Of a stretch of DNA of 64,000 nucleotides, positions 92 through 42,664 are shown in pieces (the first letter of the stretch is position 1; every line of letters begins with the position of its first letter). The position numbers and the translations under genes were made by a program. The stretch lies in the NCBI GenBank assembly GCA_002269645.1, contig NIVC01001471.1, forward strand, positions 219,523 to 283,522. The letters are read 5' to 3'. The notes beneath the pieces were generated by a model that ran no database searches, was not told where the DNA came from, and worked only from the letters and a program-made list of their open reading frames with translations. This DNA is from Macrostomum lignano (taxonomy: Eukaryota).

Positions 92-521
92 GAGCGGCTG
101 GCGCATGGCCAATGGAAGCGAATTTTTTGTCCCAAACTCTTACTGGAAATCTGGCTGGCCAGATAATGGAGGCAGCTCAGATGACATGCTGGCTCTAAGA
201 AAAGGTTTGCTTCACGACTTTGTCTCATCCAATCTGATCGGATTTGTCTGCCAGCCCGTGGCGACGCCGAACAGCGGAACCTTCCGTCGGACCAGCTTCC
301 TGCAGCTGGGCGACATCACGCCCTACTACTGCTACACGGAGGTGCAGTCGGTGCAGCGCAGGCTGCTCTGCGTTCGCCAGTGCGCTGCCCGCTGGGAGTG
401 TCGGGCGGCTCTGTTCAACCGGGCCGAGTCTCGCTGCCGCATGCTGGACTTCGCCGACGCGAGCGCGGGCGACGCCATCGAGAAGAGCGGCGCTTGGGAG
501 AAGTTCGTCAAGGTCTACTGA
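92..521 (+). CDS. C-type lectin + PAN/Apple-like protein, copy A, exon 2 (exon 1 upstream of window)
   Basis: Acceptor catcttctcAG at 90-91. Exon reads (R)SGWRMANGSEFF...GWPDN...FVCQP (CTLD second half), then CYTEV...CVRQC...C...C (PAN-like), stop 519-521. Paralogous to copies B, D, E. Confidence 0.85.
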
Positions 522-1849
522 GAGAAATTGCGTTGGCTAGAATGGCTACTTGAATTAAAACAACTCTTGACCCACAGGAGAGCAGCTTTAACCAAAACTG
601 GCAGAAACTGAACTCGAGTGCGCAATGCTAGCTCGAACGTAGGAGCAAAATACCACAAGCTTACTAAAGGCAAAAGGCCGTATTCACAACTTCTAGATTG
701 TTTGTTCCAACATTAATTTTTATTTGATCTCAAATTTACATTTCTACTATCACAGCTCAGTTAGAAACATGGATAAGCGTTTGCAGTGCAACAGCGTGGT
801 TTCACAGTGGAATATCAACCTTCTGCTGAGGGAAGAAGGCACTTTGTGAATATTCGACGGCATTACTCAAATGTTCTCACATTCATTTTAAATAACAGGG
901 AGTTAATCAGAGCGAAATTATTGAGTTTTTATAACTCAAATGCGCACGCATCTTAGGCTTGGACTCATAGTTCAGACTAATTTAGATGAATGAATTAAAG
1001 AGACGAGTGTATTTGTATTTTACGCTTTATATTCTCATGCATTTCATTGTTAGTTCCCGAATTTCAGTCTCGGTGCGAATGTAAAAAGTATTTAGAAAAT
1101 GAAGTTTCCAAGTTGTTGCTTGGAAAAGTTGTTGAGCACACGGCCTGCTGTATCTGTGGCAACTTTCTCTAATTTCCAAATATTTGCACGAGTACCATGT
1201 GTATCGAATTTTCTTCTAGAAGTTTCACTGTGCCTGGGTACCAGCGCGAGGCATCACTCAAGTTTAGCAGTAAGCGAATGAGGAGTTTGCTTTTCTACTT
1301 TTTTACGGAAGCTGAGGCGTATGCTTCACGTGATGGCAATGAGGCAAAGACATTGTCATGGCGTGAATAATCGCTAAAGCTTTTTTGAGCCCACAGAGGA
1401 AGACAAATATTGATTTAATTGCACTGGGTGTGAAGGAGAGTTTTCGGAGTCAACCACAGTCAGCGATCTGAGAGACTTTCTCAAGACACTCGCCAGGAAG
1501 TTTCACTTCCGGTAGTAATATGTTGACTCAGTGTTGGTGTTATAAACGCAGTAGTGTAGCTGATTGAGTATATTTCTTAGTCAACAAGCAACACAGTTAA
1601 GAGAGGATGAAGCCAGAGGGCGAAAGCGATTTGATCGCTATAGCAGTTTCAGACATGGACAAAGGCTATACAGTATCGTCCGAGAAAAATCTAGAATTGG
1701 GGAAACTAAAGGCAGTCACTATAATTAGCATAGATACGAACTGCAATTTACAATTAATGGCAGGCACAAGCATGAATTCGCTCTATTTCTTCTGGGGTAG
1801 GGCGATGCATAGACATCAGCAATCGGTAGCGTGCAACAAACGAAACGAA

Positions 1850-2250
1850 AATCAACTGGGAAAGTCGACGAATGCGTTGAATTGTCAGCAATCGCTCTTC
1901 TTGAGGCCGAAATAGTAGTAACGTAGGTATTCGTAGAGCTTCCACGAATCCATAATGACGCAGTCGTCCTCCGTATGCTCCCATTAGAAAGGACTTGAAG
2001 TATCCACCGTGGCGCATCATCTGCTCGTGAGTCGTCTTTGGCAGAGACCTTAACTCCACGGCGTCCAAGTCGATTGCCGCATGTTCAACTGGAAGCTCCG
2101 GCAATGGTCCATATCACCAGGGTTGGTCAGCCATTCGATAAAGTTGAAAAGCTCCTCGTCATCCTGGTGGTCATCCTGGTCATCCTTGGCACTCAGTTCA
2201 GATATCAGCTGGCTTAACTCGCTACTTGTCACACCGTTGAGCGAATCCAC
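1850..2250 (-). mobile_element. Degenerate Crypton-like (tyrosine-recombinase DNA transposon) N-terminal relic
   Basis: DDEELFNFIE / LRSLPKTTHEQ and, in another frame, KLYEYLRYYYFGLKKSDC resemble the Crypton/DUF3504 L..FY..LRK.DG region; frameshifts and stops present. Confidence 0.45.
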
Positions 2251-3026
2251 CGGGAGATTGGCCCCAGTTGATGAGAGCCATGTTTAATAGGAATAGCTGA
2301 GGGGTAGGAGAAGCTCTCGACGCCATGGACCTGCTGTGCCATTTCGAATAGCTTTATAATTTTTTTCCTTATTTCCTTACTGTTACATTGGATGAGAGTT
2401 ACGAGGAATAGAAGTGTACAAAGCTACAAAAAGTAACTTGACATTTTTTACTCTTCACTTTTTGACCACGCTCGAAACTTGCCCCTCACTTATTCAAAGT
2501 TCAATCGCTTTATACTTAGTTGTCTTGTTCCTTAACTTTTGCAACAATTTGTTATTTGTTTCAATCACTGCCTCCTTCAATTCTCTCTACATAATCAGTC
2601 AAGTACAAAAAATACAAACTAATTGCTGGTCTATCAAGAGGCAAAGTTTGTTTACCAGGCAAAAGACGCAAATGTAATGTCAGGCCATGTTACTTGTATG
2701 TCTTTAAAATAGTGCATTCTTTTCCTATGCGCGTTAATCCGTGACTTTGGAATTTCCCCTGCGTACAAGCTGCAGCCAGTAAGAACTTAAGGGGGGACTA
2801 TTATTAAATTCCAGCAGCCAATGAAATTCATGGGGGGAATATCCCAATTTTTAGGGAGTCTTGGCCATAGACTCGCTTTTAGATGAGCGATCCTTTCTCT
2901 TCCTTCATCCATGTGTGCGATCCGAATATAACGCCTTATCTCCGCCGGAGATAATGTTAGGTTAATATGAAGCACGAATTCAAGTTAATGGCCAAGGGCA
3001 CGAGTGCGCGTAGCATAGCAGTGCGC

Positions 3027-3101
3027 GTTGTTCGATTCATGCATAAATTGAGCGAGAAGGCTGGGCTATCAAAGATGTATTCCAACCATCGCATCAGGTA
3101 G
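3027..3101 (+). mobile_element. Crypton-like YR catalytic fragment
   Basis: VVRFMHKLSEKAGLSKMYSNHRIR* matches the Crypton FM..LS..AGL...YTNHxLR (H-x-x-R) motif. Confidence 0.45.
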
Positions 3102-3222
3102 TACGACTAATTTTTTTGATCTCGAAAATAACAGATCTTAGATTTTTTATTTATCTGAGAGAAAACATTGTAAACCACATGCATTAGTAATGTAATCGTC
3201 ATTGATCATATTATCTTACTGT

Positions 3223-3320
3223 CGGCTGCTGCAGACGGTCGCGCTGATGTGCCTGCGGTGGAACATGAGCGTTTGTGCGTGTCACATTCCGGGTGAATTT
3301 CAGATTTTTGCCGATGCCAC
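3223..3320 (+). mobile_element. DIRS/Ngaro-like RNase H C-terminal fragment
   Basis: RLLQTVALMCLRWNMSVCACHIPGEFQIFADA resembles the DIRS RNase H HIPG..N..AD motif. Confidence 0.4.
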
Positions 3321-3379
3321 CATGAGCGCAGTCAGCTGCTTAAATTTTTTATTCGCTGCTACAATTTCGTTTGGCCATA

Positions 3380-4252: not shown

Positions 4253-4357
4253 TGGCCAGAGCGTCATAACGCCTGTCAGTAACAGTGTCACCATTGGCAG
4301 AGCGTCACAACGCCTGTCAGTAACAGTATCACCATTGGCAGAGCGTCACAACGCCTG
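4253..4357 (+). repeat. 41-bp tandem repeat, ~2.6 copies
   Basis: Unit ttggcagagcgtcacaacgcctgtcagtaacagtgtcacca, read directly. Confidence 0.85.
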
Positions 4358-9881: not shown

Positions 9882-10889
9882 ATGTCACCTCCGAGGGCGC
9901 TCCTCCTCGCCCTGCTGAGCCTCGCCTGCCTGCGCAGCCTGCAGTCCTGCCAGCCGCCCTACCAGTCCGTGTCCGGCTTCTGCCTGCTCGTGAACACCAC
10001 AGCCGCAGTCGGCTGGTGCCAGGCAGCTCGTCTGTGCCAGGCCGTCGGAGGCGAGCTGGTGATGGAGCCGGCCGCCATCCGGGCAGCTGCGCCGTTCGCC
10101 ACGGGCTCGGTGATTCTGTGGGTTGGTGTCACCGACTTTCTGGACGAGCAACTGACTAGCAGGTAAGGCAATAAAAAATCACTTAAATGTGGAAATCTCA
10201 ACAAGGATCTAAAAAAATATACTATTTTCCTCAAAATGCGTCAAAGAGCAAGCTGCCAAACTGCGCAGCAATTCAGTTTAGAAAGTCCTTTTACCTTTCT
10301 TGCTGTGCAGTGAATGAAGAAGGACGCTACTTGAAGGAGCATTCACTATAACGATCAGACCATTCAAAAAGCAACTAACTCAACTTGGCGAACTGATATT
10401 ATGTTTTTAGTGGCTCGTGGTTCGAGTTTTTCATTTAACTTAGATTTTCACCTTCTCAGAAGCGGCTGGCGCATGGCAAATGGAACCGAATTTGTTGCTC
10501 CAAACTCTGACTGGCCATTTGGCTGCCCAAACAATAATGAGCACTCGGACGATATGCTGGCGCTATCGGATGGTGCTTTGTGCGACTTTCGGGAATTTTT
10601 CCGAGTCGGCTTCGTCTGCCAGCCCGTGGCGACCCCGAACAGCGGAACCTTCCGTCGGACCAGCTTCCTGCAGCTGGGCGACATCACGCCCTACTACTGC
10701 TACACGGAGCTGCAGTCGGTGCAGCGCAGGCTGCTCTGCGTTCGCCAGTGCGCTGCCCGCTGGGAGTGTCGGGCGGCTCTGTTCAACCGGGCCGAGTCTC
10801 GCTGCCGCATGCTGGACTTCGCCGACGCGAGCGCGGGCGACGCCATCGAGAAGAGCGGCGCATGGGAGAAGTTCGTCAAGGTCTACTGA
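9882..10889 (+). CDS. Secreted C-type lectin + PAN/Apple-like protein, copy B (intact, 236 aa)
   Basis: join(9882..10162,10460..10889); phase-2 GT-AG intron of 297 bp; 711 nt open frame. Signal-peptide-like MSPPRALLLALLSLACLRSLQS, then CTLD motifs CQPPY..GFCL, WCQAARLC..GGEL, WVG, W..G.P, FVC. Confidence 0.9.
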
Positions 10890-11984
10890 AGCTCGGAGAC
10901 CTATTGCAGATCGGGCAGACTCTGGAGAGACACTGAAACACCAGCGCCTCACAAGGCCTTGTCATCGCTAACAAGAACAAGCGATTGCCCAAAAAGCCTA
11001 GTCATTTGAGCGAGAGTCGGATTTTCCTAATCCCAAACTGTTCAGCCAGTTAACTATGGTCGCGCGAAGGCCATGAGTTTTGAATATTTTTGTGTAAGTG
11101 ATGAATACCAAAAACTCAAAAATACAATCTCCGATGACATCGCAGAGACGAGCACTGAAAAATGGATTTATTGCATTTTTCCTTCGTTTAGCTTGGGCTT
11201 TTTCTAGGATTTTATCCATATCATAGGCATAGACAAAGCGGATTCCATTTGGCAACAATAAAGCTCTTTTTCACTGGAGACTTTCCAATGCATTTTGCTT
11301 TTATCAAAACGGAAGCCATCAAATCGTCTTCTGGATAAAGCAAAAACTTCAGCATCATTTTTCTTCCTTGACGTGTCGACTGATTAGACGAAGAGCTTTT
11401 CACAAAGACATTTTTCCTGTCATTAAAGAGGTGGCATGTACTGCTGCTTGCATTCATTTGCACGTGTGGCTGAGCTGGGAGCTGCAGACGCAGAGTTCAG
11501 GCCTTAACTGTCGCGAGCTCGAAGAACAGCTCTTTAGTTGCTAGGGTATTCTTACCTGACGCTACCGATAAAAATTCGTGTGCGAGGCTGTCCATCTGTG
11601 AGCAGTCCGATTGTTTTTGGCGATATTTCGGCTTGATGAAGATTTTAAGACGCTGCTGAAGTTGTTAGAAGCTGAATGTTACGAGCGTATTCATAAAAAT
11701 GGGCTGTGCTGCTGAGCTTAGAGTTATTATTCCTTTTCTGTAACCGTTGCAGAATATTTTTCAAATTTCTCTAGTTGGCAAAAGGCCTGAAGCGCTGCTA
11801 CAAATTTATGAAATTTTGCCGACTATCATGATAGAATCAATGCATGGTAACTATGACTTTTTGTCCTTTACTTTGCTCCAATTTACTTTTCAATGGAACA
11901 GCGAGTTCGATCCGTACTCATATTTTTAACCAGAACTGTTCTTTAGCAAGTATTGAGAGGGAGACCAGTCTCCCAGCTGACATT

Positions 11985-12098
11985 TCTCAACTGACCAGTC
12001 ACTCAGCTAACCAGTCACTTAGCCGACCAGTCACTCAGCTGATCAGTCACTCAGCTGACCAGTCTCCCAGCTGACCAGTCTCCCAGCTGACCAGTCTT
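11985..12098 (+). repeat. 16-bp minisatellite (cagctgaccagtcact family), short array
   Basis: Direct reading; same unit as 37730-38440. Confidence 0.9.
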
Positions 12099-12102
12099 CC
12101 AG

Positions 12103-14788: not shown

Positions 14789-15068
14789 ATGTCGACTCCG
14801 AGGGCGCTCCTCCTCGCCTTGCTGAGCCTCGCCTGCCTGCGCAGCCTGCAGTCCTGCCAGCCGCCCTACCAGTCCGTGTCCGGCTTCTGCCTGCTCGTGA
14901 ACACCACAGCCGCAGTCGGCTGGTGCCAGGCAGCTCGTCTGTGTCAGGCCGTCGGAGGCGAGCTGGTGATGTAGCCGGCCGCCATCCGGGCAGCTGCGCC
15001 GTTCGCCACGGTGAAGCTGTGGGTCGGCGTCACCGACATGCTGGAGGAGCGGCTCGCTAGCGGGTTCG
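14789..15068 (+). pseudogene. Lectin copy C: orphan exon 1 with premature stop
   Basis: Near-identical to exon 1 of copy B, but GAG>TAG at 14972-14974, a small in-frame deletion before LWVG, a degraded donor (agcgg/gttcg) and no exon 2 nearby. Confidence 0.85.
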
Positions 15069-16946: not shown

Positions 16947-18785
16947 GATTACTGCACTCGATAAGCTAAGGATTATTGCTCTTGGCAAACCAAGGAATAC
17001 TGCACTCGATAAGCCAAGGATTATTGCTCTTGGCAAACCAAGGATTACTGCACTCGATAAGCCATGGATTATTGCTATTAATAAACCAAGGATTATGCAC
17101 TTGGCAAACCAAGGATTACTGCAATCGATAAGCCAAGGATTATTGCTATTAATAAACCAAGCATTACTGCACTCAATAAACCAAGGACTATTGCTATTAA
17201 TAAACCAAGGATTACTGCACTAAAAAAACCAAGGACTATTGCTCTTGGCAAACCAAGGATTACTGCACTCGATAAGCCAAGGATTATTGCTATTAATAAA
17301 CCAAGGATTACTGCACTCGATAAGCCAAGGATTATTGCTATTAATAAACCAAGGATTAATGCACTCGATAAACCAAGGATTATTGCTATTAATAAACCAA
17401 GGATTACTGCACTCGATAAGCCAAGGATTATTGCTATTAATAAACCAAGGATTATGCACTTGGCAAACCAAGGATTACTGCACTCGATAAGCCAAGGATT
17501 ATTGCTATTAATAAACCAAGGATTACTGCACTCAATAAACCAAGGACTATTGCTATTAATAAACCAAGGATTACTGCACTCAATAAACCAAGGACTATTG
17601 CTCTTGGCAAACCAAGGATTACTGCACTCGATAAGCCAAGGACTATTGCTCTTGGCAAACCAAGGATTACTGCACTCGATAAGCCATGGATTATTGCTAT
17701 TAATAAACCAAGGATTACTGCACTCGATAAGCCAAGGATTATTGCTATTAATAAACCAAGGATTACTGCACTCGATAAACCAAGGATTATGCACTTGGCA
17801 AACCAAGGATTACTGCACTCGATAAGCCAAGGATTATTGCTATTAATAAACCAAGGATTACTGCACTCAATAAACCAAGGACTATTGCTATTAATAAACC
17901 AAGGATTACTGCACTCAATAAACCAAGGACTATTGCTCTTGGCAAACCAAGGATTACTGCACTCGATAAGCCATGGATTATTGCTATTAATAAACCAAGG
18001 ATTACTGCACTCGATAAGCCAAGGATTATTGCTATTAATAAACCAAGGATTACTGCACTCGATAAGCCATGGATTATTGCTATTAATAAACCAAGGATTA
18101 CTGCACTCGATAAGCCAAGGATTATTGCTATTAATAAACCAAGGATTAATGCACTCGATAAACCAAGGATTATTGCTATTAATAAACCAAGGATTACTGC
18201 ACTCGATAAGCCAAGGATTATTGCTATTAATAAACCAAGGATTATGCACTTGGCAAACCAAGGATTACTGCACTCGATAAGCCAAGGATTATTGCTATTA
18301 ATAAACCAAGGATTACTGCACTCAATAAACCAAGGACTATTGCTATTAATAAACCAAGGATTACTGCACTCAATAAACCAAGGACTATTGCTCTTGGCAA
18401 ACCAAGGATTACTGCACTCGATAAGCCAAGGACTATTGCTCTTGGCAAACCAAGGATTACTGCACTCGATAAGCCATGGATTATTGCTATTAATAAACCA
18501 AGGATTACTGCACTCGATAAGCCAAGGATTATTGCTCTTGGCAAACCAAGGATTACTGCACTCGATAAGCCATGGATTATTGCTATTAATAAACCAAGGA
18601 TTACTGCACTCGATAAGCCAATGATTATTGCTATTAATAAACCATGAATTACTGCACTCGATAAGCCAAGGATTATTGCTATTAATAAACCAAGGATTAC
18701 TGCACTCGATAAGCCATGGATTATTGCTATTAATAAACCAAGGATTACTGCACTCGATAGCCAAGGATTACTGCGCTTGATAAGC
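16947..18785 (+). repeat. 24-bp satellite with 48-bp dimer and higher-order structure
   Basis: Alternating aa(a/g)ccaaggattactgcactcgat and aaaccaaggattattgctattaat / ...tgctcttggc monomers. Confidence 0.95.
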
Positions 18786-21482: not shown

Positions 21483-21515
<33 letters not shown>

Positions 21516-26400: not shown

Positions 26401-26929
26401 AGAGAACGGTTTGCTCAGCGCATCAAAGTGTAGCCATTTGTATGACCCATTTTTCTTAAATCCTCTCACCGTGTTGTCTGCTGCTATACTCGTAAAAAAA
26501 TTTGACTTGATATTTATTCCTTATTATCTCGCCTCCGCAGATAGGTCTGAATTGTGCGAAACAGAAAAAAAATTATTTCATATTGGATTAGGCTGCTAAC
26601 AGAGGTACAGAGTTAGTAAATGAGGCTTACAGCATGGTGGTGGTTCGACCTGTAAATGTTTTAGATGTTTGGTTATTAGCTGATGAAGAGCTTTATTTTG
26701 ACACTGACTTTGTGCCTGGTGCGTACTTGTCGGTGCATTTAGGGTGTAAGGGATTTTCTACGATTGTAACTAATATACTGTATTGTATTGTGCTCACTAG
26801 CAATCAGAAGCCAAGACAAGAAATACTAATATAGGTAATAATTAAACTATGAAGAACACGCAGGTGATGTGGGTGAGGTGAGGCTCAGCCTGCTTTAAAT
26901 TTTAAAAATCCTGTCGTTGATAGTGCAGG

Positions 26930-27745
26930 GGGTAGCATGCGTCTTTGTTCGTGGGATTCTGAACTTGAAAATGACCCTGATCAGAATCCTAGACAACATC
27001 GCAAATGGTTTTCGCATTACTGATGGCAAAGAGCTTTGTGAGACTTTTAATGCCGATTACATGTCTACTGCTGCAATTCACCGCGCTGTTGAGCGGCAAA
27101 TTAAGGAAGAGATTGAAAATGGCAGGTACGTTGTGGTTCCTGAGAAGCCTACGTTGGTCAGCCCTCTTGGAGCTATTCCCAAGGATAACGGGAAGCTTCG
27201 GCTTATTCACGACTGCAGCACGCTTCCGGGCTGCTCGGTAAATGATAATTATACGAAGAAGCTGAGCCCCAGGTTTGACTCCGTCAAGAGGGTTGCAGCC
27301 TCTATCGGTAAGGGCTGGTTCATGGCGAAGCTTGATCTGTCGCAAGCTTACAGAAGTGTGGCGATTCATCCGGATGATTACCAGGCGACTGGAATTGGTT
27401 GGCGCTTTAAACCAACCAATTCCGTTATCTGACATGGCTTGTCGACATCCGGCTACCCTTTAGTAGCTGCGCCTTGGTCGAGATTTTCTACCGGCTTACT
27501 CAAGCGGTCAAGAGGATGATGGTGCGTCGCGGCGTGGCCAATAGTTCGGTCTACCTGGATGATTTTCTGGTTGCGGCTGAGAGCGAGGAGGAGTGTATGG
27601 ATGCCCTGAAAGAGCTGATGAAGTTGGTTCGCCAGTTAGGTTTTGGTGTCAACGGGAACAAAGTGGTTGAACCTACGCAATGCTTGGTGCATCTCGGTGT
27701 GCAGGTTGATACTGTCGGTGGAGTTCTTATCGTGCCGGCGGAAAA
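26930..27745 (+). mobile_element. DIRS/Ngaro-type retrotransposon reverse transcriptase (frameshifted, truncated)
   Basis: SPLGAIPK..GKLRLIHDCS, KLDLSQAYRSVAIHP, RLPF, VYLDDFLV, HLGVQVDT motifs. Confidence 0.85.
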
Positions 27746-28344
27746 CCGGTTCTCAACATCTATTTTTAGAACTTCCAAATATGGTAAATGTTAACCTGAA
27801 TGCGACCCAAGTATCACCCTTTTCTATTCAAAAACCCCACCTGTCAAGTAATAAAATTCCTTTCGTGAACTCATCAAAAAACCGTTTTTTAGCTCAACGT
27901 CGACTCAAGGCCGACAAATAGTGTATAAATACAAACGCAAAATCCGAGCTGAAATCTCAGACTCGGAGCAGCCTCAAAAAATCTTGGGCCTTTCAAGAGC
28001 AGCCAAAGAGGCTATATCTCTGAGGAAGAAATATACCAATTGGTAAGCTTTGTTCGAGTCTTCGTTATTTGATTATTAAGAGCGATTTTATTGCCGGCTC
28101 TTACTGATCAGTTGATTTTACTGAGTCTATTGAGTTTGAGGCCTCCCTTATCCTAAGAGATTGGATAGGATCTGCGGACCGATTCCGATACCCTTAGAGG
28201 ATTATTGATTTGATTGATTTCGGTACCCTAGAGTAACCGATAGGAGCATACGACTCCGATTCCGTTGTTTCTAGAAGACACTTTTTCTGGAGGACCTCGT
28301 CATTGCTTTAAAGCTGACTTTGTTATTAGGGCGCATCGCTGATT

Positions 28345-28584
28345 CTGCACTCGAGGAATATAATGATTTCTGCACTCGAGGAATATAATGATTTCTGCAC
28401 TCGAGGAATATAATGATTTCTGCACTCGAGGAATATAATGATTTCTGCACTCGAGGAATATAATGATTTCTGCACTCGAGGAATATAATGATTTCTGCAC
28501 TCGAGGAATATAATGATTTCTGCACTCGAGGAATATAATGATTTCTGCACTCGAGGAATATAATGATTTCTGCACTCGAGGAAT
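28345..28584 (+). repeat. 25-bp perfect tandem repeat, ~9.5 copies
   Basis: Unit ctgcactcgaggaatataatgattt; no spacers. Confidence 0.95.
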
Positions 28585-28989
28585 ACTTCGACGTCGACGG
28601 ATTAAATTGTTACGCTCTCATATTCGGCCGATTTTGGAATTCAAGAAGACTACTCCGGAGGAAGAAGATTTGAAGAAACGAGCTCGGAGAACCTGCCCGA
28701 CAAAGAAGAGGAGCCCGCACCGGTAAGTGATCACTGGATTTTGTTCCCAGGCTTAACGTCTGGAAGAAGGAGTTTTCGAGTGACTGATCACCACACGATC
28801 AAACTCTTCAGCTGGTACCACGTTTTTGCGGACCCGTGCTCTAGGCTGCACGCGGAGGACAAGATGCGCGATTTTTTATTTTGGCACTGTAAACTGCTGT
28901 TTTAATGAGATCGTTAGGCATGCTGTCTGCCCTGCTGTCTCTGTTTTTCTTATTTTGCAGGCCCTCCGCGCCAGACTCCCGACCGCCTC

Positions 28990-29905
28990 AGCAAGCGCTG
29001 CGCTTTTCTCCTCGGCAATGCCTACGCGCCCCGCACGAAGCGGAGTTACCCGTCGCAGCTCGCGTCAGCTGGCTGCGTTTTTGAAACTACCAGCACTTTA
29101 CGCCGGCGCGGGCACAGCCGGCGCACGTGGCCGAGTACCTCGCCGAGCTGTCCGCCCGGCTGTCAGCCTTTCGGAGTTGCCAGGCGTACGCTAACGCTGT
29201 CTTGCTGAACTTCAGAGCCCTCGGTCAGCCGGACCCGTGTGAGTCGCCGATGGTCAAGCTGGTGCTTCGTGGTCTTCCCCGATGTCTCAGTCGGCAGCAG
29301 CGCTCAAGGGAGCCGTTCAGAATTGCAGACCTCCTCAAGCTGCACGCCCACCTTGACCAGCGACTGAAGAGTGACATCGCGTTCTGGGCAGCTGTTCTGG
29401 CAGCCTGGTGTGATATGCTGCAGAAAGTGAATGTGACGACGCAATCGGAGCAGCTCGATCTGTGGTGCGACCTGGCGGCATCAAACATCGTCTTTTCGGA
29501 GTGCGACTATGAGCTCACCGTGCGGCATTCAAAGACCAACCAGGTTGGCGACCGAGTTCAGCGAGTGTTTCTTCCGAAACTGCCTGATGGGAGCTTGGGT
29601 GTCCTGTGCCCGTTCCGTGCACTCGAGCGGCAGCCACGGGCAAACCGAGTCGACCAGGCGCCGCGTCCGGTTCACCTGTTCTCCAAGTGGTCGGCGACGG
29701 GATGGTTGCCTCTGACGGCTAGCAAGTTTGATAGCCGGCTTCGCGCGCTGTGCACATCGGCGGGTTTGTCGCCACGCGAGTTCACTGGCCACGGGCTGAG
29801 GCGGGGCGGCGCTACAGCAGCCATGCAGCTCGGTGTTCCACTGACGATGATCAAGAAGTTGGGCGACTGGAAGGGCAACTCGGTGTTTCGCCGCCTAGCG
29901 TACAT
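28990..29905 (+). mobile_element. DIRS/Ngaro-type tyrosine recombinase (probably inactive)
   Basis: NAYAPRTKRSY (frameshifted 5' part), SKTNQ, LCP, FTGHGLRRGGAT, GDWKG. The first catalytic Arg appears as LQK and the expected Tyr (VFRY) as VFRR. Confidence 0.85.
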
Positions 29906-30109
29906 CTATCTGTTCGGGACTCGGACGCAAGGGCGGCTGTGCATGGCTTGGCTCGTTGGGTTGGTGCGCTCTAACTCTCTCTTTGTCGAACTTTCTTGGT
30001 TTGGATTGGGCCAGGCTCGAACCTGCGCCTCTCGTGCCAACTGCCTTGACTTCGTCTCACTGGTTTAACAGTGCAATAATCACTTTCTCAGCTAGTACAA
30101 TAATCCATC

Positions 30110-30600: not shown

Positions 30601-32504
30601 ATTACCTACCTACCGACAAACCATTTTTGTTTCGACTATGATTTTCAAAGCAAAAAAACTTGACTGACTGAATTCTGATTCTGATAAGTATTGCATCAAA
30701 ACAGGCTTTTTTATCATTAGTTGACTGGCTGAATTGTGACTCCGACTCACGTCACAATAAAACAAAGTTTGGCAGTACAGCACTGGACTGCATTTAGATT
30801 GCGTAACTGTCTAATTGCTTAGTAGGACAAATAATGAAGATGGAACTTGAATGACTAACACTTAAAGCCAAAATTAGCAACAGGCGAACAGTGAAAGTTT
30901 TAATGGGTCGTAAAAAGTCGGAAGAGAATCGGTGCACCGAGGCGAGAGCCGCAGGCTATATTTAAAAGTAATAAGACTGGACCTCTTCGTGTGCCACGCT
31001 CACGGGAGAGGCCAAATTATCGATCGTGCAACTATTATACGAACGGTTCTGAATACACACAAGCACAGAATAAGACGGCCCAATGGGGGGCCAGCATACA
31101 CAAAATTTCTGAGAGGAAATAGGAAATTATATGATTAATTGTCAGATTAATGCATAAATCTGACAGCAGCCATTCTGTAATCTTTAATACACAATTACTA
31201 TACACAATAAACTTTAATACGAATCAGTTCCAAATATTTTGCTTGAAAAAGTCCATTACTTTCTCAAAAATGGTTCCTGTGTTCGAAACTTTCATCCACA
31301 GAAATACATGTCAAACTCGACCCGGTTGATTGAAGCAGCTCTCACCCCGACCCAATCTGTCTTACGGAAAATCTCATATGTCTCAGAGGATTTTCTGTGA
31401 CCTGTCTTCAGTTTATGACATGGTGGTGAATGCAAAATGAATAAGAATAAATTCTATTTGTATTTAGTGTCAATGGAAATGTTGCTCATTGTGTTTTTTG
31501 CAGACTACTAAGTCAGGTGATTAAAGCCGCTACCTCGGGTCAGGCACCACTGCGCTTAATTGTCTCTGTTTACTGCTGCAGCAATCCAGAGCGATTGGGT
31601 AGTTGGCTACAGCAAAATTCATACCAGGAAGGACATTAGGCGTACGTGTAATATCTCATGCCTGAATTGCTATTTTGAAACGCTACTGCTTTCTATTTGC
31701 TGTCTTCTATTCTGAAGAAAGCATTCTAAACTATTTGCTGCATTAGCTTCGTACTCCCAGATGTATTTATAGTGTCTGTTAACAACTTACCAACCCAGGG
31801 AAATTCCGACAACTTTTCTTTTGATGCTGCAGCGCGCCTGATAGCTCTTCCTGCTGGCTGCAGCAAATGCTTTATTGAGCGATTAACTGCTGGAAATAAA
31901 TGATAGCATTTCTATAGTGTGGGGAAACGCTTGAGCAATGATGACTGGGGTATGGATCAATCGACTCAGCGAACCTAATCCTTGGCTGGGTTCTGCAATA
32001 TATAGTACTCATACTTATTATTGGGCCAAAGCGCGGAAAAGAAGAATTGATGCCAGAAGTTAAAACGCCATATGCAGGATAACGACGTCGTTTCAAACAT
32101 AAAACACCCTGTCAACTGTGGGAGTTGCTGAGTTTTCAAGGCTCAATATGGTTATTACTGAAATGGTATGACTGTCAGCAGGGTTAAAATTAGGTTTAGG
32201 GCTCAACCATAAAAACATCGCCCTGTCAAGCATAAACGGCTCATGCGAGAATCATTAAAATGCTACAGCAAATGATGGATTTGCTAAGATCTAGCTATGT
32301 ACTCGTGGACGGTTCTATGGCTCATGGGAAGAATTTTCGAGGTGTCAAACTTCATGTAATCCAGGAGTATCTGAATTGCTGTGGCATTAACAAGAAATTA
32401 ACAATAGTGACTGTACAAGGTCAAAACCTACATACAGTTTATTTCAAAGCTTTTCAATTATTTTCTCGTTGCCCCCATCAACCAAGGTGCAGATTGCTAG
32501 TGTA

Positions 32505-33260
32505 GCTTTTTGCAGCCCATTTGGATTTACGCGCATTGAATTAAATCCAAGATACGTTTGCCAATGTAACGGAGCTTTTGTCTATTGTAGCAAGGCTGGC
32601 ACAGCAGCATTTAATTTGGTCCAACAAGCATCAATTTGGTCCAAACGCTCGTGAGCCATTGGACAAACTCCTGCCCTCCAGCAACCGTCTGTGGGTTGTT
32701 GCGTACTGCTGGAATGTCAGCGTGTCTACCACAAATTTTCAGTCGCTTTTCCAGAGCTCTGCTCATAGTCGAAGTCTGATAACCAACTGGAACTGTTTTT
32801 TCAACTTCTGCTGCATTTTCGGCAACGTCAAAAAAGGGTTTCTCAACTGCATCGAGTAGCAGTTGGACCTGAGGCTCTCGAAACTTGCTTTGGCGATTGC
32901 CACTCTTTCGCAGGTGATCTCTGCCGCCTGTGGTTGCAGCACGCTGATGGATGCTGTAAACCATATTTTCTTTTATATTCAGCAACCTTGCAGTGTCCTT
33001 TGGGTGTTCACCTCTGTCGAGTGCTTCGATAGCATGCCAATGGCATTGGTTCGACAGCCTAGCATATGGTCCACAATTCTGGGGATGATCTTGCTCCACC
33101 GCAGCAGTTGCAAATAAAGCTATGGACCAATTGATGCTTGTTGGACCAAATTAAATGCTTCTGTGCCAGCCTTGCTACCATAGACAAAAGCTCCGTTACA
33201 TTGGCAAACGTATCTTGGATTAAATTCAATGCGCGTTAGCCCAAATGGGCTGCAAAAGGC
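32505..33260 (-). mobile_element. Non-autonomous Tc1/mariner-type element with ~140-bp TIRs
   Basis: TA TSD at 32503-04 and 33261-62; TIRs 32505-32642 / ~33123-33260; internal HTH remnant IEALDRGEHPKDTARLLNIKENMVYSI. Confidence 0.8.
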
Positions 33261-33516
33261 TAGATTAGTGCTAATTGGGCTCACTAATAAAAATGCAACG
33301 CAGGACCCAACTGAGGCTTGTCTATTGCATGCATTGGCGCAATGAGCTTCCAGCCAACCAAAGTATTGTGAAACCTGGGACACTCCAGTGAAAAATCAAT
33401 TTTGCATACTTATTGGCTGAGAGCATGGCAGATGGGGTCCAAAACCCACATATTATAAAATGGCCGTACCAGTCGCCTCCTGCTCAGCAAGCAAGTTCTC
33501 TGAATCTGAAGCAAGG

Positions 33517-36500
33517 ATGTCACCTCTGAGGGCGCTTCTCCTCGCCCTGCTGAGCCTCGCCTGCCTGCGCAGCCTGCAGTCCTGCCAGCCGCCCTACCAG
33601 TCCGTGTCCGGCTTCTGCCTGCTCGTGAGCACCACAGCCGCAGTCGGCTGGTGCCAGGCAGCTCGTCTGTGCCAGGCCGTCGGAGGCGAGCTTGTGATGG
33701 ACCCGGCCGCCATCCGGGTAGCTGCGCAGTTCGCCACGGGCTCGGTGAACCTGTGGGTCGGCGTCACCGACATGCTGGAGGAGCGGCTCACTAGCAGGTG
33801 ACGCAATCAGCATCGAGTATCGTTGTGCTGAATCTCGGAAAATCTCATCTGAATTCCCATTCATTAGCTTTCAATGCGTACAGATGCTAATTTTCTAGCT
33901 TGAATATTAATAGCTCAAAGGGGATGTGAACTTCAGAGTCAAAATGGAGCCTGAAGCCTTGGGTCCCGATTTCTCTACGCTAATCCCTTCATTTTGAGCC
34001 AAATGGCTCCCGTTATGCCGAAAACCCGACCACTTTGGCATTTGGAGATCTCTATGGGGAGAAATGGAATAAAAGGGGATTTCATGTGTATTTAACAGTA
34101 GAAAGACCACGCTATTTTTCCCCACGGGGAAAGACCACGAGGGGTGTAATACAAATGAAAGTGAATTACCGATTTTCGTAAAAGTCCACCATATGCAACA
34201 AAATTTTCCGCCCTTTTCGACGAACTAACTTTTAAAGTCATACGACGTCAGAATCGTCGAGACATTCAGCGATTCTTGTCCAAGACACTGGTGGCAAGGA
34301 CAACCAACTACACTGTATAAAACTTTATGGTGAATCCATATTGGCTCAATAATCTGCGTCCATCTGTCGAAGAGGCCTTTGTTCTCAGCATCCCAGGCAC
34401 CAGGGTCCCCTTCATCACCGTCTGGAGCATCGGCGGCGACCGTCGGGACCTTCAACAAAAGCACCCGATCGGCATCTCAGAGACGGCTGCGTTCCCAAAA
34501 CTGCCCGTTTTCAGAAGCTGCTTCCCAAAACTACCCGGACTCCTAGGGCTGCCGCCACGACTACACCGACAGCGTCCTTTGCTTCCGCCGACTTCCTGGG
34601 CAACAATGACTCTTGGCCGCCAATAGCACGCTACCCGAGTGATCGACGCCAGTCCGCCACTCCTGGCACGGGCGCCAACCCCTCGCCTCTTCAGTCCAAA
34701 TGCTTCGTTCCCACCGCCAACCAGCAGCAGCATAAGCCCAGCCACCCATGCCTCTATTGCGACAGCTCCGACCATGCCACCATGTCCTGCTGCAACATCC
34801 AAATGCCCGATGACCGGCTTAAAATAGTCCGGAACAAGAACCTTTGCCGCAACTGCCTTCGCCGACACCACATCAGGGACTGCCACGACAACCGGCATTG
34901 TCGTACGTGCGATGCTCCACACCACACCTCGCTGCAGGGGCCACCTTCGACAGCGCCCGCTCCAGCCATCGCTCGCCTAAGACAGGCCAAAACGCCTACG
35001 TTAATTCAGGTTGTGACGCCGACTCCAAAGAGACAGCCAACTCCATAGTCTTTGCCGACGGAGGTCTCGTGCCGACCATCATGGCTACCTTCCGGGCGAA
35101 GGCCGTCAACCTGAAAGATGCCACTCGGTCGACTGCACAATTTCTCTCGACTCAGACTGCTCATACTCGCATCTCGATACGGCACCCTTGCCTACAAGCT
35201 TGGTCTCAGAGCCTCTAAGAGACTCACGATGCCACCTCTACCTTTTACTCGGAATCCAGTCGTCAGATTACTGCGGACCTCGTCAGTTTTGACCTCCAGG
35301 CCCCAAACGGTCGTCGCTGGACAATCACAGCCCTCGCCTCCGACCAGCTAGCAGCCCCGTTCTATATACCGGCCTTTGGGCTCCTTGAAGATGTCCTTAA
35401 CACCCTCAGCAGTGTCAACAACGGCGTCTGCAACCTTCCGCCCGATCATGATGCAGACGGCATCCTCGACCTCATCCATCCTCGCTGGCGACGTGAACCA
35501 GTTACTCACCAGCCATGCCGTTCCTGCCCTCGCTCTTCGACCGACTCTAACAGCCTACTTGACGCGCTTCGGAGCCATCCTCAACAGTGCTATCACTGAC
35601 ACGGGTGCCCGCAGCATCAACAGCTTCCTCGGGTCCTCGCAGGCCTCTCAGGTCCTCTTCGCTAACACCTACCACAACATCAGCAACGATAACGGCTCAT
35701 CGAAGTTCTCAGCATCGCGAAGGACGCTGGAAAGCATGGCCCCAAAGACAACGAGCTGACTTGACGCCTTCTCGCGTCCATTACCCGTGACTAAAATGGC
35801 CGCATGGTCAACTTGCCATTCAAAGACGGCGCTGCACTTCTTCCATCAAACTTCGGCCAGGCCCTTTGGTCGTGCTCAGGATACTTATTCTGAGCCTTTC
35901 TCAGCGTGACTAGAGGTACACAAAAAATATTGTACTCAAAATAACACAGGAAGATTTCCCATCACATGAAAACCCCATTTATCCTATTTATCCCATTTCT
36001 CCCCATAGAGATCCCGAAATGCTAAAGTGGTCGGGTTTTCGGCATAACGGGAGCTATTTGGCTCAAAATGAAGGGATTAGCGTAGAGAAATCGGGACCAT
36101 TTTGATTCAAGTTCACATCCCCTTTTATAGCTGAACTGCTATTTTCATCTTCTCAGGAGCGGCTGGCGCATGGCCAATGGAAGCGAGTTCGTTGTCCCAG
36201 ACTCTGACTGGAGGCCTGGCTGGCCAAATAATGGTGACAGCTCGGACGATATGCTGGCTCTAAGAAAAGGTTTGCTTCACGACTTTGTCTCATCCAATCT
36301 GATCGGCTTCGCCTGCCAGCCCGTGGCGACCCCGAACAGCGGAACCTTCCGTCGGACCAGCTTCCTGCAGCTGGGCGACATCACGCCCTACTACTGCTAC
36401 ACGGAGGTGCAGTCGGTGCAGCGCAGGCTGCTCTGCGTTCGCCAGTGCGCTGCCCGCTGGGAGTGTCGGGCGGCTCTGTTCAACCGGGCCGAGTCTCGCT

Positions 36501-36586
36501 GCCGCATGCTGGACTTCGCCGACGCGAGCGCGGGCGACGCCATCGAGAAGAGCGGCGCATGGGAGAAGTTCGTCAAGGTCTACTGA
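33517..36586 (+). CDS. Secreted C-type lectin + PAN/Apple-like protein, copy D (intact frame, 236 aa)
   Basis: join(33517..33797,36157..36586); exon lengths 281 and 430 as in copy B; GT at 33798, AG at 36155-36156; intron enlarged to 2359 bp by a TIR element. Confidence 0.85.
33916..36126. mobile_element. 2.2-kb TIR element inside lectin D intron carrying a BEL/Pao fragment
   Basis: ~170-bp imperfect TIRs (caaaggggatgtgaac... / ...gttcacatcccctttt); ATAGCT on both flanks. Confidence 0.8.
34640..35800 (+). mobile_element. BEL/Pao gag zinc-knuckle + protease fragment
   Basis: LCRNCLRRHHIRDCHDNRHCRTCDAPHHTSL (BEL/Pao-type multi-knuckle); degenerate LDSDCSYS protease motif; TRFGAIL. Confidence 0.75.
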
Positions 36587-37729
36587 AGCTCGGAGACCTA
36601 TTGCAGATCGGACAGACTCAAGGAAAAGACTTTGAAACACAAAAATGTCACGTGGTCCTATCGGCGCAAACGATTGTGAACCATTTTTCTAAAATCTTAG
36701 TCGCTTGAGCAAGAGTCGGATTTTGCTAATCTCAAACTTTTTAGTCAGCTGGCACTTGTCGCGCAAAGTGTTGAATATTTTATTGTGTGTGGTGAAAGGC
36801 ACAAATACAATCTTCTGTGTGTGGTGGAGACGAGCACTGGCAGGAAAATGGAGTTATTGCATTTTTCTTGTTAGTTTGGGTTTTTCTGAGAACTTTATCC
36901 ATATTATAGGCATAGGCAAAGCGGATTCCATTCGATTAATAATGGATCTGTTTTCACCGGAACCATTTCACTGAATTTTGTTTTAGCTAGTATCAAAACG
37001 GAAGCCGATAAATCGTCTTCTGGCTAAAACTATTACTTTTACACTATTTTCCTTCCTTGACTGATTAGACAGAGTTTTTCACAAAACATTTTCCAGCCAA
37101 CTACTGCTGCTTACACTCATGCGAGACTTCGATGCGAGGCTGTGGCTTAGCTGGGAGCAGCAGACGCAGAGTTCAGGCACCTGTCTTGACTATCGCGAGC
37201 TCGAAGCACATCTTAGTTGCTAGGGGTGTTCTTAACGGACCCTTCCGACGAAAGGCCGTGCACGCGGCCATCTGTGAGCAGTCCCATTATTATTGGCGAT
37301 TATTTCGGCTTAATGAAGATTTTTAAGACGCTACCGATGTAGTTAATGTTAATGATATCCCCTTAAAAACGCAATATGCTGGGCCCAGTTGAGCAAGCAG
37401 TTATTATTCCTTATTTTTGTAACCGTTGCAGAATATTTTAAAAATTTCTCTAGTTAGCAAAAGGCGTAAAACGCCGCTAAAAATCTGTGAAGTTGTGCAC
37501 TTTATAAGTGTCTGGGTTTGAAATCTTCGGCATATCTTCTTATCGTAGCTTCTCCTCAAATGTTCAGAAGTATATGAAATTTTGCCGACTATCGTGATGG
37601 AATCAATGCATGGCAACCATGACACTTTGCCCTTTTCCTTGTTCCAATTTACTTTTCAATGGAACAGCGAGTTCGATCCGTACTTATATTTTTAACCAGA
37701 ACTGTTCTTTAGCAAGTATTGAGAGGGAG

Positions 37730-38440
37730 ACCAGTCTCCCAGCTGACATTTCACAAGTCATTCAGTCATTCAGTTGACCAGTCTCTCAGCTAAGCAGTCT
37801 CCTAGCTGACCAGTCACTCAGCTGACCAGTCACTCAGCTAACCAGTCTCCCAGCTGACCAGCCACTCAGCTAACCAGTCACTCAGCTGACCAGTCACTCA
37901 GCTAACCAGTCTCCCAGCTGACCAGTCACTCAGCTGACCAGCCACTCAGCTAACCAGCCACTCAGCTGACCAGTCACTCAGCTAACCAGTCACTCAGCTA
38001 ACCAGTCTCCCAGCTGACCAGTCACTCAGCTGATCAGCCACTCAGCTAACCAGTCACTCAGCTAACCAGTCACTCAGCTAACCAGTCACTCAGCTAACCA
38101 GTCTCCCAGCTAACCAGTCACTCAACTAACCAGTCACTCAGCTAACCAGTCACTCAGCTAACCAGTCACTCAGCTAACCAGTCACTCAGCTGACCAGTCA
38201 CTCAGCTGACCAGTCATTCAGCTGACCAGTCTCCCAGCTGACCAGTCTCTCAGCTGACCAGTCACTTAACTGACCAATCACTCAGCTGACCAGTCACTCA
38301 ACTGAACAGTCAGTCACTAAGCTGACCAGTCACTCAGTTGACCAGTCACTCAGCTGACCGGACTACATGTATCAGCTGACCAGTCACTCAACTGACCATT
38401 TTCTCAACTGACCGGGCTATCAGCTGACCACTGACCAGAA
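37730..38440 (+). repeat. 16-bp minisatellite (cagct[g/a]accagtcact), ~40 units
   Basis: Direct reading. Confidence 0.95.
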
Positions 38441-39430: not shown

Positions 39431-40160
39431 GTCTCGAGAGTCTCCAAACGCCATCTGAGGCAGCTTTGATTTCATTTCTGCAATCCAAAACCAAAATTGC
39501 AGCCCAATGAACACTGCACTGCAGTAGGTTAGACTATGAACGGTTTTCTATCTCAACAAATCAGAATTAGCGATAGGGATCACAATAATACGAGCTTAAA
39601 AATTTCCCTAGGCCGAAGTCTATTGGACGATGGGGTCTCCAATGGAATTCAGATTTGAACAAAAAACCGATGCGCTTTCAGAGCTGTGGCGTCTCCTGGA
39701 ATTTTTTGTCGAATCGAACTCTGAAGTGATGTTGACTCAGAGGGCGCTCCTCCTCGCCCTGCTGAGCCTCGCCTGCCTGCGCAGCCTGCAGTCCTGCCAG
39801 CCGCCCTACCAGTCCGTGTCCGGCTTCTGCCTGCTCGTGAACACCACAGCCGCAATCGGCTGGTGCCAGGCAGCTCGTCTGTGCCAGGCCGTCAGAGGCG
39901 AGCTGGTGATGGAGCCGGCCGCCATCCGGGCAGCTGCGCCGTTCACCACGGGCTCGGTGAACCCTGTGGATCGGCGTCACCGACATGTTGGAGGAGCGGC
40001 TCACAGGCAGGTGAGTCAGTTAGCATCGAGTATCAAGTGTTTCTGCACAGAGCAACTTTGATGCCTCTCTTTGCAGACAAAACTCAGAAAAAAATATTCA
40101 TTCCTCATAGCACTGTGGTAAAGTTGCGCGTCTGAGAAAAAGTAGAATTAAGAAGGTGAG

Positions 40161-40228
40161 CGCTATCATTTTTATGCGACATGTTTCGCCTTGCGTCAGG
40201 CATCGTCAGGCTCTTAAAATTAGTAACG
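40161..40228 (-). ncRNA. Minimal type I hammerhead ribozyme (pLTR copy)
   Basis: Reverse complement of the 41454-41521 motif. Confidence 0.75.
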
Positions 40229-40360
40229 ATTTATTTGTTCATTTATATTTAACAATTAAGACTAAGAACGGGTCGATAAAAGTCAGAAATGTATATAAAT
40301 TAACAGTAGATTGTACAGTCTGATGGAGCGCTCACAGAGTTACAATGAGGGGAGAGAGGG

Positions 40361-40403
<43 letters not shown>

Positions 40404-41279
40404 TGAGAGAGAGAGAGAGAGAGAGAGTGAGTGAGATGAGCACAAGTGTACACCTAGAATACTCTAAGGAGGGCACTGGCACCGTGATTGGCAAGTTGCT
40501 TATTTAGGATTGGTTTACGCGATTTTATATACAGGGCTTCAAGCACTTTCAGTCTGTACTCATTTGAGCACGTATGGATGGTGGAAAAGTTTTTATTTAT
40601 TTGGCTGTCACAGCATTCTTTGCATATCATCAGGTGGTCGTGCACGGCCGACATCTTTTGCCTATGTTCTCTACTTCTCACGTACAGGTGTCGGGTAGTT
40701 TCACCTATGTAGGTGATACTCTGGTCGCCAGAGCATTGAAATTGGTAAACGACACCTGCCCGTGGAGCTGGGAACGCGGCATTTCAAATTCTTAACAAAT
40801 CGACCGATTTTCTCGCAACGGAAAGTGACCATGAGCTTCACATTTAAATACTTATTAAACGCTCTGATGAGGTTCTTTTTAAAATGAACAGAAGCAGGCC
40901 CATAGAAAGGAATGGAGATATGGGTGCAATCAATCCTCAGATCTTTCTGTTCTTCCTTATTCTGTCTATTGTTAGGATTCGCGACTTTACCATCAATGAA
41001 TTTCCTAATGTGGTAATCGAGGAACCGTTTCGGGTAGTTGTTTTTGGAAAAATAGGTGCTAATCGAGCAAATTTCTTCGTGGAAACTAGTCCAGGTGCTA
41101 CAGATTTCGAAAGCCCACCGGGCCACCGTCTGTACACTGTACTCAAATGAGTACAGACTAAAAGTGCTTGAAGCCCTGTATATAAAATCGCGTAAACCAA
41201 TCCTAAATAAGCAACTTGCCAATCACGGTGCCAGTGCCCTCCTTAGAGTATTCTAGGTGTACACTTGTGCTCATCTCAC

Positions 41280-41323
<44 letters not shown>

Positions 41324-41453
41324 CTCTCTCCCCTCATTGTAACTCTGTGAGCGCTCCATCAGACTGTACAATCTACTGTTAATTTATATACATTTCTGAC
41401 TTTTATCGACCCGTTCTTAGTCTTAATTGTTAAATATAAACGAACAAATAAAT

Positions 41454-41521
41454 CGTTACTAATTTTAAGAGCCTGACGATGCCTGACGCAAGGCGAAACA
41501 TGTCGCATAAAAATGATAGCG
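41454..41521 (+). ncRNA. Minimal type I hammerhead ribozyme (inverted pLTR copy)
   Basis: CUGACGA (41473-79), stem II GCCU/AGGC, GAAA (41495-98), very short stem III AC-au-GU, GUC site (41502-04); bulged stem I gc/gc, atttt/aaaat, cgtta/tagcg. Confidence 0.75.
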
Positions 41522-42664
41522 CTCACCTTCTTAATTCTACTAATCCTCATAGCATTTCATGCTAACAGATACTACAAGAATTTTTTTATTATAGATAAAA
41601 TATTATAGCTGATCAGATATTCTCATCTTCTAAGGACCGACTGGCGTATGGCCAATGGAAGCGAGTTTGTTGCCCCAGACTCTGACTGGGGATCTGGCAA
41701 GCCAAACAACTCCTGACCGACTTGATCTCAACACACCTGATCGGATTTGTCTGCCAGCCCGTGGCGACGCCGAACAGCGGAACCTTCCGTCGGACCAGCT
41801 TCCTGCAGCTGGGCGACATCACGCCCTACTACTGCTACACGGAGGTGCAGTCGGTGCAGCCCAGGCTGCTCTGCGTTCGCCAGTGCGCTGCCCGCTGGGA
41901 GTGTCGGGCGGCTCTGTTCAACCGGGCCGAGTCTCGCTGCCGCATGCTGGACTTCGCCGACGCGAGCGCGGGCGACGCCATCGAGAAGAGCGGCGCTTGG
42001 GAGAAGTTCGTCAAGGTCTACTGAAGCTCGGAGACCTATTCCAGATCGGGCAGATTCTGAAGAGACTCTGAAACACTAACGCCTCACAAGGCCCTGTCAT
42101 CGCTAACAAGAATAAGCGATTGCCCAAAACCCTAGTCATTTGAGCGAGAGTCGGATTTTCCTAATCCCAAAATGTTCAGCCAGTTAATTATTGTCGCGCG
42201 AAGCCCATGAGTGTTGAATATTTTAGTATAAGTGATGAATACTAAAAACTCGAAAATACAATCTTCGATGACATGGCAGAGACGAGCACTGAAAGATGGA
42301 GTTATTGCATTTCTCCTTCCTTTAGCTTGGGCTTTTTCTAGAATTTTATCCATATCAAAGGCATAGACAAAGCGGATTCCATTTGGCAACAATAGAGCTT
42401 TATTCACCGGAAACTTTCCAATGCATTTTGCTTTTATCAAAACGGAAGCCATTAAATCGTCTTCTGGATAAAGCAAAACTTCAGCATCATTTTCCTTCCT
42501 TGACGTGTTGACAAATTAGAGGAAGAGCTTTTTAGAAAACTTTTTTCCTACCATTAAAGAGGTGGCATCTACTGCTGCTTGCATTCATTTGCACGTTAAG
42601 ATTGACGATTTGAATATTTTTGTGTTGCGCTAATGCCTACGGTTCTATCGCATCTGTCCAGTAC

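Follow-up and report, generated by a model that had tools for sequence, protein, structure and literature searches.

Gene conversion among duplicated genes can keep most of their length alike while a short "island of divergence" escapes it, as in the human RHD/RHCE, red/green opsin, KIR and MHC genes, and the Teshima-Innan model reportedly treats just this case, tandem duplicates in which a diverged island is not converted. Invertebrates, in turn, possess expanded sets of secreted C-type lectins, such as the nematode clec genes and the C-type lectins of molluscs and arthropods. Both backgrounds bear on a gene cluster of the flatworm Macrostomum lignano, found at positions 92-42024 of a 64-kb window (by which we mean the whole stretch analyzed, 64,000 nt of contig NIVC01001471.1). 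The cluster consists of five loci, A to E, of a single two-exon gene on the plus strand; the product of an intact gene comprises a signal peptide, a C-type lectin-like domain (CTLD) and a PAN/apple-like domain. We consider it probable that these loci are old tandem duplicates subject to repeated gene conversion, in which a block encoding the CTLD loops has stayed diverged under moderate purifying selection.

As in the classical islands of divergence, conversion here appears to have erased the differences along most of the gene, including those at synonymous sites, and has left a short functional segment diverged; trees change along the gene and pseudogenes participate. The gene family is a different one, and whereas the classical cases have known selected sites, the island described here is recognized as a pattern in the sequence. 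With the secreted lectins of other invertebrates the cluster shares small CTLD proteins, tandem clustering and variable loops; unlike them, its proteins are without the EPN/QPD and WND motifs and the C3-C4 disulfide, have a PAN domain fused at the C-terminus, and are known from sequence alone. Conversion acting on part of a gene is also described for clustered CTLD genes, the KLRC/NKG2 receptors, where it is reported to homogenize the ligand-binding domain (PMC3210942); in the present cluster, by contrast, the part with the binding loops is diverged and the rest homogenized, and the products appear to be secreted proteins, not membrane receptors.

The components of the cluster are as follows, all on the plus strand.

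92-521, plus strand: copy A, exon 2; variable segment 140-244, PAN-coding part 245-521, stop codon TGA at 519-521.
9882-10162, plus strand: copy B, exon 1; ATG, signal peptide and first half of the CTLD, splice donor AG/GTAAGG.
10163-10459, plus strand: copy B, intron of 297 nt.
10460-10889, plus strand: copy B, exon 2; variable segment 10508-10612, PAN part 10613-10889.
10890-12096, plus strand: copy B, 3' flank, ending in a 16-nt minisatellite.
14789-15063, plus strand: copy C, a relic consisting of exon 1 without exon 2; in-frame TAG at 14972 and a 6-nt deletion after 15008.
33517-33797, plus strand: copy D, exon 1.
33798-36156, plus strand: copy D, intron of 2359 nt, enlarged by an insertion flanked by inverted repeats (33917-34073 and 35987-36125).
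36157-36586, plus strand: copy D, exon 2; variable segment 36205-36309, PAN part 36310-36586.
39729-40010, plus strand: copy E, exon 1; a +1 insertion at 39962 causes a frameshift.
40011-41634, plus strand: copy E, intron with an insertion bearing 439-nt inverted repeats (40133-40571 and 41139-41549).
41635-42024, plus strand: copy E, exon 2; 40 nt deleted after 41709, stop codon within the shifted frame, PAN part 41748-42024.

Only B and D are intact two-exon genes; their GT-AG splice sites are in phase, and splicing gives open reading frames (ORFs) of 236 aa. The splice model is supported by a relative of 45% identity, encoded on a 1.15-kb contig, in which an uninterrupted ORF spans the predicted exon junction. 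Copy A has its exon 1 off the window, to the left of the window edge, and C and E are pseudogenes: C because of its in-frame TAG, its deletion and its missing exon 2, E because of its frameshift, 40-nt deletion and stop codon. The peptide strings that the initial annotation quoted for the copies are correct, and the gap mark in that of copy E conceals the frameshift. Four copies could be compared for exon 1 (B, C, D, E) and four for exon 2 (A, B, D, E); a tblastn search of the window brought up no others.

Divergence among these copies is very unevenly distributed along the gene. In the PAN-coding end of exon 2 (its last 277-280 nt), A, B, D and E show 1-6 pairwise differences, with at most four in a strict 274-nt core; the near-identity of this end had been noticed before, with an upper limit of three differences that proves too low. 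Over the first 232 nt of exon 1 the copies differ at 5-13 positions and a 124-nt core is identical in all four, whereas the final ~50 nt are diverged in B (10-14 differences from the others in the last 49 nt); the earlier picture of five copies sharing an almost invariant exon 1 has to be corrected accordingly, as no segment is present five times. Between these conserved parts lies the variable segment at the start of exon 2 (alignment columns 101-205, ~105 nt), with pairwise identities of 58-90% and a GC content of 0.46-0.51, against 0.67-0.68 in the PAN part and 0.68-0.70 in exon 1; both the heavy divergence and the lower GC content had been reported correctly. Copy B has the most divergent loop set (DWPFGCPNNNEHS...SDGALCDFREFF), at 58-64% identity to the others, and A and D are identical over the second half of the variable part (0/56 nt) but differ at 14/94 nt before it.

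The contrast extends to synonymous sites. Synonymous divergence (dS, Nei-Gojobori; all such estimates derive from three to four sequences and ~50 codons) is 0-0.05 in the PAN part and 0.32-1.23 in the variable part. Between A and B, synonymous differences number 14/23 in the variable part versus 3/65 in the PAN part (Fisher p=6e-8), and between B and D 10/22 versus 0/65 (Fisher p=1.6e-7); this clustering of differences is far beyond chance. With dS near 0 directly beside dS of 0.32-1.23, the contrast must reflect the age of the segments, not constraint on the protein.

The history of the copies also changes from segment to segment. Informative sites at alignment columns 91, 125, 173 and 194 group A with D and B with E, those at columns 203, 206, 227 and 455 group A with E and B with D, and the 3' flank places B with E. 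Dead copies are included in the homogenization: the PAN part of pseudogene E is 1 nt from that of A, and the 5' part of exon 1 in relic C has 95-98% identity to the other copies. The GC content at third codon positions (GC3) reaches 0.83-0.91 in the homogenized parts and 0.53-0.61 in the variable zone, compared with 0.64-0.72 in ten of eleven other ORFs tested from the window and 0.54 in the eleventh. A drop in synonymous and non-coding divergence between adjacent segments, together with incompatible trees along one gene, is the pattern of concerted evolution; given the dS contrast, the segment-specific trees, the pseudogenes with identical parts and the raised GC3, gene conversion of the scaffold, which the initial annotation had already proposed, is well supported.

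Sequences around and between the exons place the diverged block in its context; they have diverged far more than the conserved parts of the exons. With transposon insertions removed, the part of the A intron inside the window is 84.6% identical to the D intron, and the start of exon 2 is 85% identical between the same copies, i.e., it has the same 15% divergence as the intron, in line with the neutral rate. The B intron, at ~50% identity to the others, is at the level of an unrelated control and cannot be aligned. The inverted repeats in the D intron (157 nt) are 85% identical and those in the E intron 92% identical, and the two insertions differ from one another; the element in the E intron has an ORF of 173 aa (40701-41222, minus strand) without a Pfam match. 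Homology of copy A to the other copies stops exactly at its stop codon, beyond which the 3' flank is unrelated, and homology of copy C begins ~8 nt 5' of the ATG and stops at the donor site.

Farther out, the 3' flanks of B and E (42025-42596) are 92-93% identical over ~570 nt, the B-D and D-E comparisons give 75-81% (D flank 36587-37498), and the flanks of B and D overall 72-82%; the ~130 nt upstream of copy D (33386-33516) have ~89% identity with the sequence upstream of B. A 16-nt minisatellite (consensus roughly CAGTCACTCAGCTGAC) recurs at 11963-12096, 37763-38430 and 42658-42902, ~0.6-1.2 kb 3' of the stop codons of B, D and E, and therefore belongs to the original duplication unit. Upstream of D, the stretch with homology to the corresponding region of B is broken by a Tc1/mariner-like insertion (32497-33268) bounded by 147-nt inverted repeats of 93% identity and encoding an ORF that contains a helix-turn-helix motif (32611-33099, minus strand).

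These observations are accommodated by the following history. The array would go back to old duplications of a gene with two exons whose product is a small secreted protein composed of signal peptide, CTLD and PAN domain, and repeated conversion would then have replaced the sequence of exon 1 in its GC-rich 5' part and that of exon 2 in its PAN end, in dead copies too, such that the converted parts now appear just 0-5% diverged. Conversion tracts would halt where the copies differ too much, namely in the intron, with its transposon insertions and the unalignable version in B, and in the adjoining coding sequence. The latter comprises the final ~50 nt of exon 1 on one side and the initial ~95-150 nt of exon 2 on the other, and codes for the loops of the CTLD and its strands beta3-beta4. 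The block as a whole may have retained its old divergence under moderate purifying selection, and GC-biased repair is the probable source of the raised GC3 in the converted parts. The net outcome would be one scaffold bearing a few different loop sets. The uneven divergence, the switches in topology, the dead state of C and E and the fold of the protein come straight from the data, while conversion as the mechanism, its GC bias and the reason for the tract boundary are inferences. For copy B the unconverted zone runs from the end of exon 1 across the intron into the start of exon 2, and is therefore not a self-contained cassette; nor does the diverged block have a fixed edge, the conversion boundary lying at column ~147 for A-D and ~200 for the other pairs, and the discrete cassette described initially finds no support.

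Several points weigh against this history. Few sequences (three to four) and ~50 codons are available, making the estimates noisy, and the analysis is based on the assembled sequence. Strikingly, the limits of the conserved blocks lie close to landmarks of the gene, namely the ATG, the splice donor, the CTLD/PAN border and, in A, the stop codon; tracts limited purely by divergence need not end at such places, and selection against homogenization of the loops may therefore help to set the boundary. Such selection, or a self-reinforcing barrier of divergence beside the diverged intron, could equally explain where the tracts stop, as judged from three to four sequences. Finally, nonsynonymous divergence (dN) between B and D amounts to 0.47 in the variable part, against a divergence of ~0.26 in the outer flanks, which, taken alone, could hint at adaptive change; we ascribe the excess to more recent conversion of the flanks, since the adjacent intron and the synonymous sites of the variable part itself are older still.

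The most serious alternative accepts conversion of the scaffold and proposes that positive or balancing selection, together with shuffling of half-cassettes, maintained the differences between the loops or diversified them, yielding a receptor repertoire. The variable zone does coincide with the canonical binding face of the CTLD, and among 38 distant family members it varies more than any other part of the protein (2.69 bits versus 1.88-2.27 bits elsewhere), although the loops are usually the most variable part of CTLDs. The boundary near column 200 is common to several pairs and falls on the CTLD/PAN border, the B-D excess of dN discussed above points in the same direction, and dN/dS is raised in comparisons with B (0.44-0.66), where bootstrap upper bounds reach ~1.0-1.4 (in B pairs only). 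However, dN/dS in the variable segment is 0.20-0.66 across all pairs and below 1 in every pair and sub-segment, the fraction of bootstrap replicates with a ratio of nonsynonymous to synonymous differences (pN/pS) of at least 1 being 0.01-0.18 at low power. The positive selection suggested by the initial annotation is not borne out at this level, selection on single sites being beyond the power of three sequences. Neither is the segment hypervariable, as had been supposed, because the intron beside it has diverged at least as far, A and D differing by 15% in both and the B intron being beyond alignment. The loops occur in about three versions, one of A/D type, one in B and one in E, the last of them on a dead gene; the boundary shifts between pairs; and the A/D mosaic, correctly noted as a shared second half, is a conversion tract longer by ~55 nt and lends no support to shuffling. 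We therefore regard diversified loops as unlikely; a receptor role in immunity, mucus or adhesion is speculative.

It is very unlikely that conversion played no part and that strong purifying selection on the nucleotides of exon 1 and the PAN part, through codon usage, mRNA structure or an overlapping element, produced the near-identity. A GC3 of 0.83-0.91 would be compatible with strong codon bias, and the conserved blocks do stop at coding boundaries, but the identity is found also in pseudogene E and relic C, where such selection cannot act, the tree topology switches between segments, and B and E remain 92% identical across ~570 nt of non-coding 3' flank. Moreover, the synonymous sites of the PAN part are saturated relative to the nearest outside relatives (proportion of synonymous differences, pS, 0.61-0.67); the PAN sequence thus has no built-in constraint at the nucleotide level, and we reject this form of the explanation for it.

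Templated diversification would turn the same arrangement around. Pseudo-V genes of the chicken immunoglobulin loci serve as templates for diversification by conversion. Intact copies (B, D and possibly A) and dead ones (C and E) would in that case swap patches of loop sequence, in the germline or somatically; if this were true, the identical flanks would be homology arms for loop swapping, and the lectin repertoire of the flatworm would be greater than its gene count. The cluster resembles the chicken pseudo-V genes and the somatically diversified lectin-like genes of invertebrates, such as the FREPs of Biomphalaria and the sea urchin 185/333 genes (PMC1988830), in that intact genes and pseudogenes exchange sequence; it differs from them in that conversion homogenizes, the window bears no sign of somatic events and the repertoire is tiny. 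We rate this possibility as highly improbable.

That the identity was created by consensus polishing, with reads of paralogs cross-mapped, is scarcely credible, for although blocks of 230-280 nt with at least 98% identity fall in the range of short-read cross-mapping, each copy has private substitutions inside the conserved blocks and sits in unique flanks with its own intron and transposon insertions, polishing cannot bring sequences diverged by 25-50% to 99% identity, and the shift in GC3 is a biological signature. A mechanism like that of diversity-generating retroelements, with which the cluster shares a variable binding region of the C-type lectin fold and a nearby reverse-transcriptase gene, is rejected, the substitution spectrum not being adenine-specific (9/15 to 23/50 of the substitutions involve adenine, in an ordinary mix of transitions and transversions), no template repeat being present, and the reverse transcriptase of the window being part of a DIRS-like retrotransposon that also has a tyrosine recombinase.

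The encoded proteins are indeed of the lectin type, probably with a PAN domain, and this identification can be placed on a broader footing. Direct Pfam matches are weak: against Lectin_C (PF00059) copy D scores 15.7 bits, below the gathering cut-off of 22.6, and B has no match; against PAN_1 (PF00024) the window proteins score 20.7-21.3 bits, just below the cut-off of 21.4. An exhaustive HMMER search, however, gave 214 relatives at E<=0.001, many of them full-length proteins of ~240 aa, and among 42 aligned family members 34 match Lectin_C (best E-value 9e-13) and 23 match PAN_1 (best 4.8e-7) at E<=0.001. Since the window proteins stay below the Pfam gathering score, their membership in the CTLD superfamily rests on transitive homology and fold. 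A word-indexed protein search found nothing with copy D and only 15 and 3 matches with family alignments, and a metagenome scan for related loci gave no relative. Exact look-ups of the window proteins in the public collections and assemblies searched likewise gave no match. The sole named relatives are from Macrostomum lignano, one with 49% identity, which is part of a chimeric gene model, and one with 34%, a CTLD protein. A 720-aa model named "guanylate cyclase" (P0002; UniRef A0A1I8HX01, Macrostomum lignano) contains a complete lectin-PAN unit at residues 460-672, and is probably a gene-model fusion with the lectin-PAN unit inside cyclase sequence. Our literature searches returned no description of the lectin-PAN family or of its clusters.

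An AlphaFold2 model built with the 42-sequence alignment reached a predicted local distance difference test (pLDDT) score of 93.4, the single-sequence model (pLDDT 39) being useless. The predicted structure has the CTLD fold, with two helices, two sheets and a long-loop region; consistent with this, 50/50 of the Foldseek matches listed for the PDB are CTLD carbohydrate-recognition domains (CRDs), including Mincle, SIGN-R1 and CD23, with target TM-scores of 0.7-0.8 for single-domain matches, and all 17 sequence matches in the PDB are CTLDs (best E=0.003). The CTLD signature is present as CQPPY...GFC, ARLC...GF(A/V)CQ and LWVGVTD, corresponding to C0-C0', C1-C2 and the WIGL motif; the cysteines of the CTLD are invariant or nearly so in the family alignments and would form the C0-C0' and C1-C2 disulfide bonds. 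In the PAN half four to five cysteines are conserved, and the C-terminal half is modeled with confidence as a sheet plus helix.

Sequence alignment and model agree that the variable segment maps to the long-loop, EPN and WND region of the CTLD, as the initial annotation had it. Aligned with CD23, the copies have WPN, CPN, WPD or KPN at the EPN position and LHD, LCD or LTD at the WND position; "DDML" stands for the usual "EDC", and the C4 cysteine is missing in A, D and E. The combination that defines a strict CRD, EPN/QPD plus WND with the C3-C4 loop disulfide, is absent, whereas more distant family members retain the C3-C4 cysteines and at least one (P0022) retains EPN. With EPN and WND replaced and the C3-C4 cysteines missing, these are probably non-canonical CTLDs and not classical Ca2+-dependent sugar binders.

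The window as a whole is animal DNA: its introns are of the GT-AG type, and it holds genes for an amiloride-sensitive channel and for NHL-repeat proteins besides a DIRS-like retrotransposon and large minisatellites. Scans of the 64 kb with Rfam and for tRNAs were empty. Inside the cluster, AT-rich minisatellite arrays (16947-18785, 19170-20014 and 22100-23727, with periods of 24/48 nt and 23 nt) occupy ~7 kb between copy C and the retrotransposon and contain long spurious ORFs on both strands. The DIRS-like remnant (26917-30068) comprises reverse-transcriptase fragments matching RVT_1 (E 1e-3 and 4e-6), a 313-aa tyrosine-recombinase ORF (Phage_integrase, E=1.6e-5) and, at 28343-28585, a perfect tandem repeat of 25 nt x 9.7. 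Beyond copy E, two adjoining ORFs without Pfam match lie at 43545-44806. The 167-aa product of one has a hydrophobic segment and a tail of low complexity, and that of the other, 253 aa long, is built on a 36-nt x 9.8 repeat (98% identity) that encodes (AATPAPKAAPAS)n; the latter looks like a mucin-like or structural repeat protein. Consecutive ORFs of 153, 413 and 212 aa at 45511-47849 (plus strand), again with no Pfam match, may be one gene broken by frame changes or short introns. A gene for an amiloride-sensitive sodium channel of the ASC/DEG/ENaC family (49010-50644, minus strand) is represented by adjoining ORFs of 328 aa and 210 aa (Pfam ASC, E 7e-30 and 5e-12), and the 15 nt that separate these point to either a very short intron or a frameshift. 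On the minus strand there follows a tandem gene pair (51308-52093, 53221-53682, 54182-55135, 56143-56775), each member apparently consisting of an N-terminal ORF that to the eye has the look of a coiled coil and a C-terminal ORF of beta-propeller-like type, which in one member has an NHL repeat match (E=1e-6); the pair resembles TRIM-NHL proteins, with no RING or B-box seen.

Taken as a whole, the cluster shows concerted evolution clearly but in an unexceptional form, and adds one more case of a familiar process, from an uncharacterized lectin-PAN family. It illustrates that a variable core between conserved flanks need not imply hypermutation or positive selection, and for annotation it means that two of the five loci are to be labeled pseudogenes. 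Gene conversion, probably GC-biased, makes these old duplicates seem young over most of their length, while the segment with the binding loops keeps their history. The family itself is one of secreted CTLD-PAN proteins of ~240 aa, in which the subgroup encoded in the window seems to have lost the canonical sugar-binding residues.

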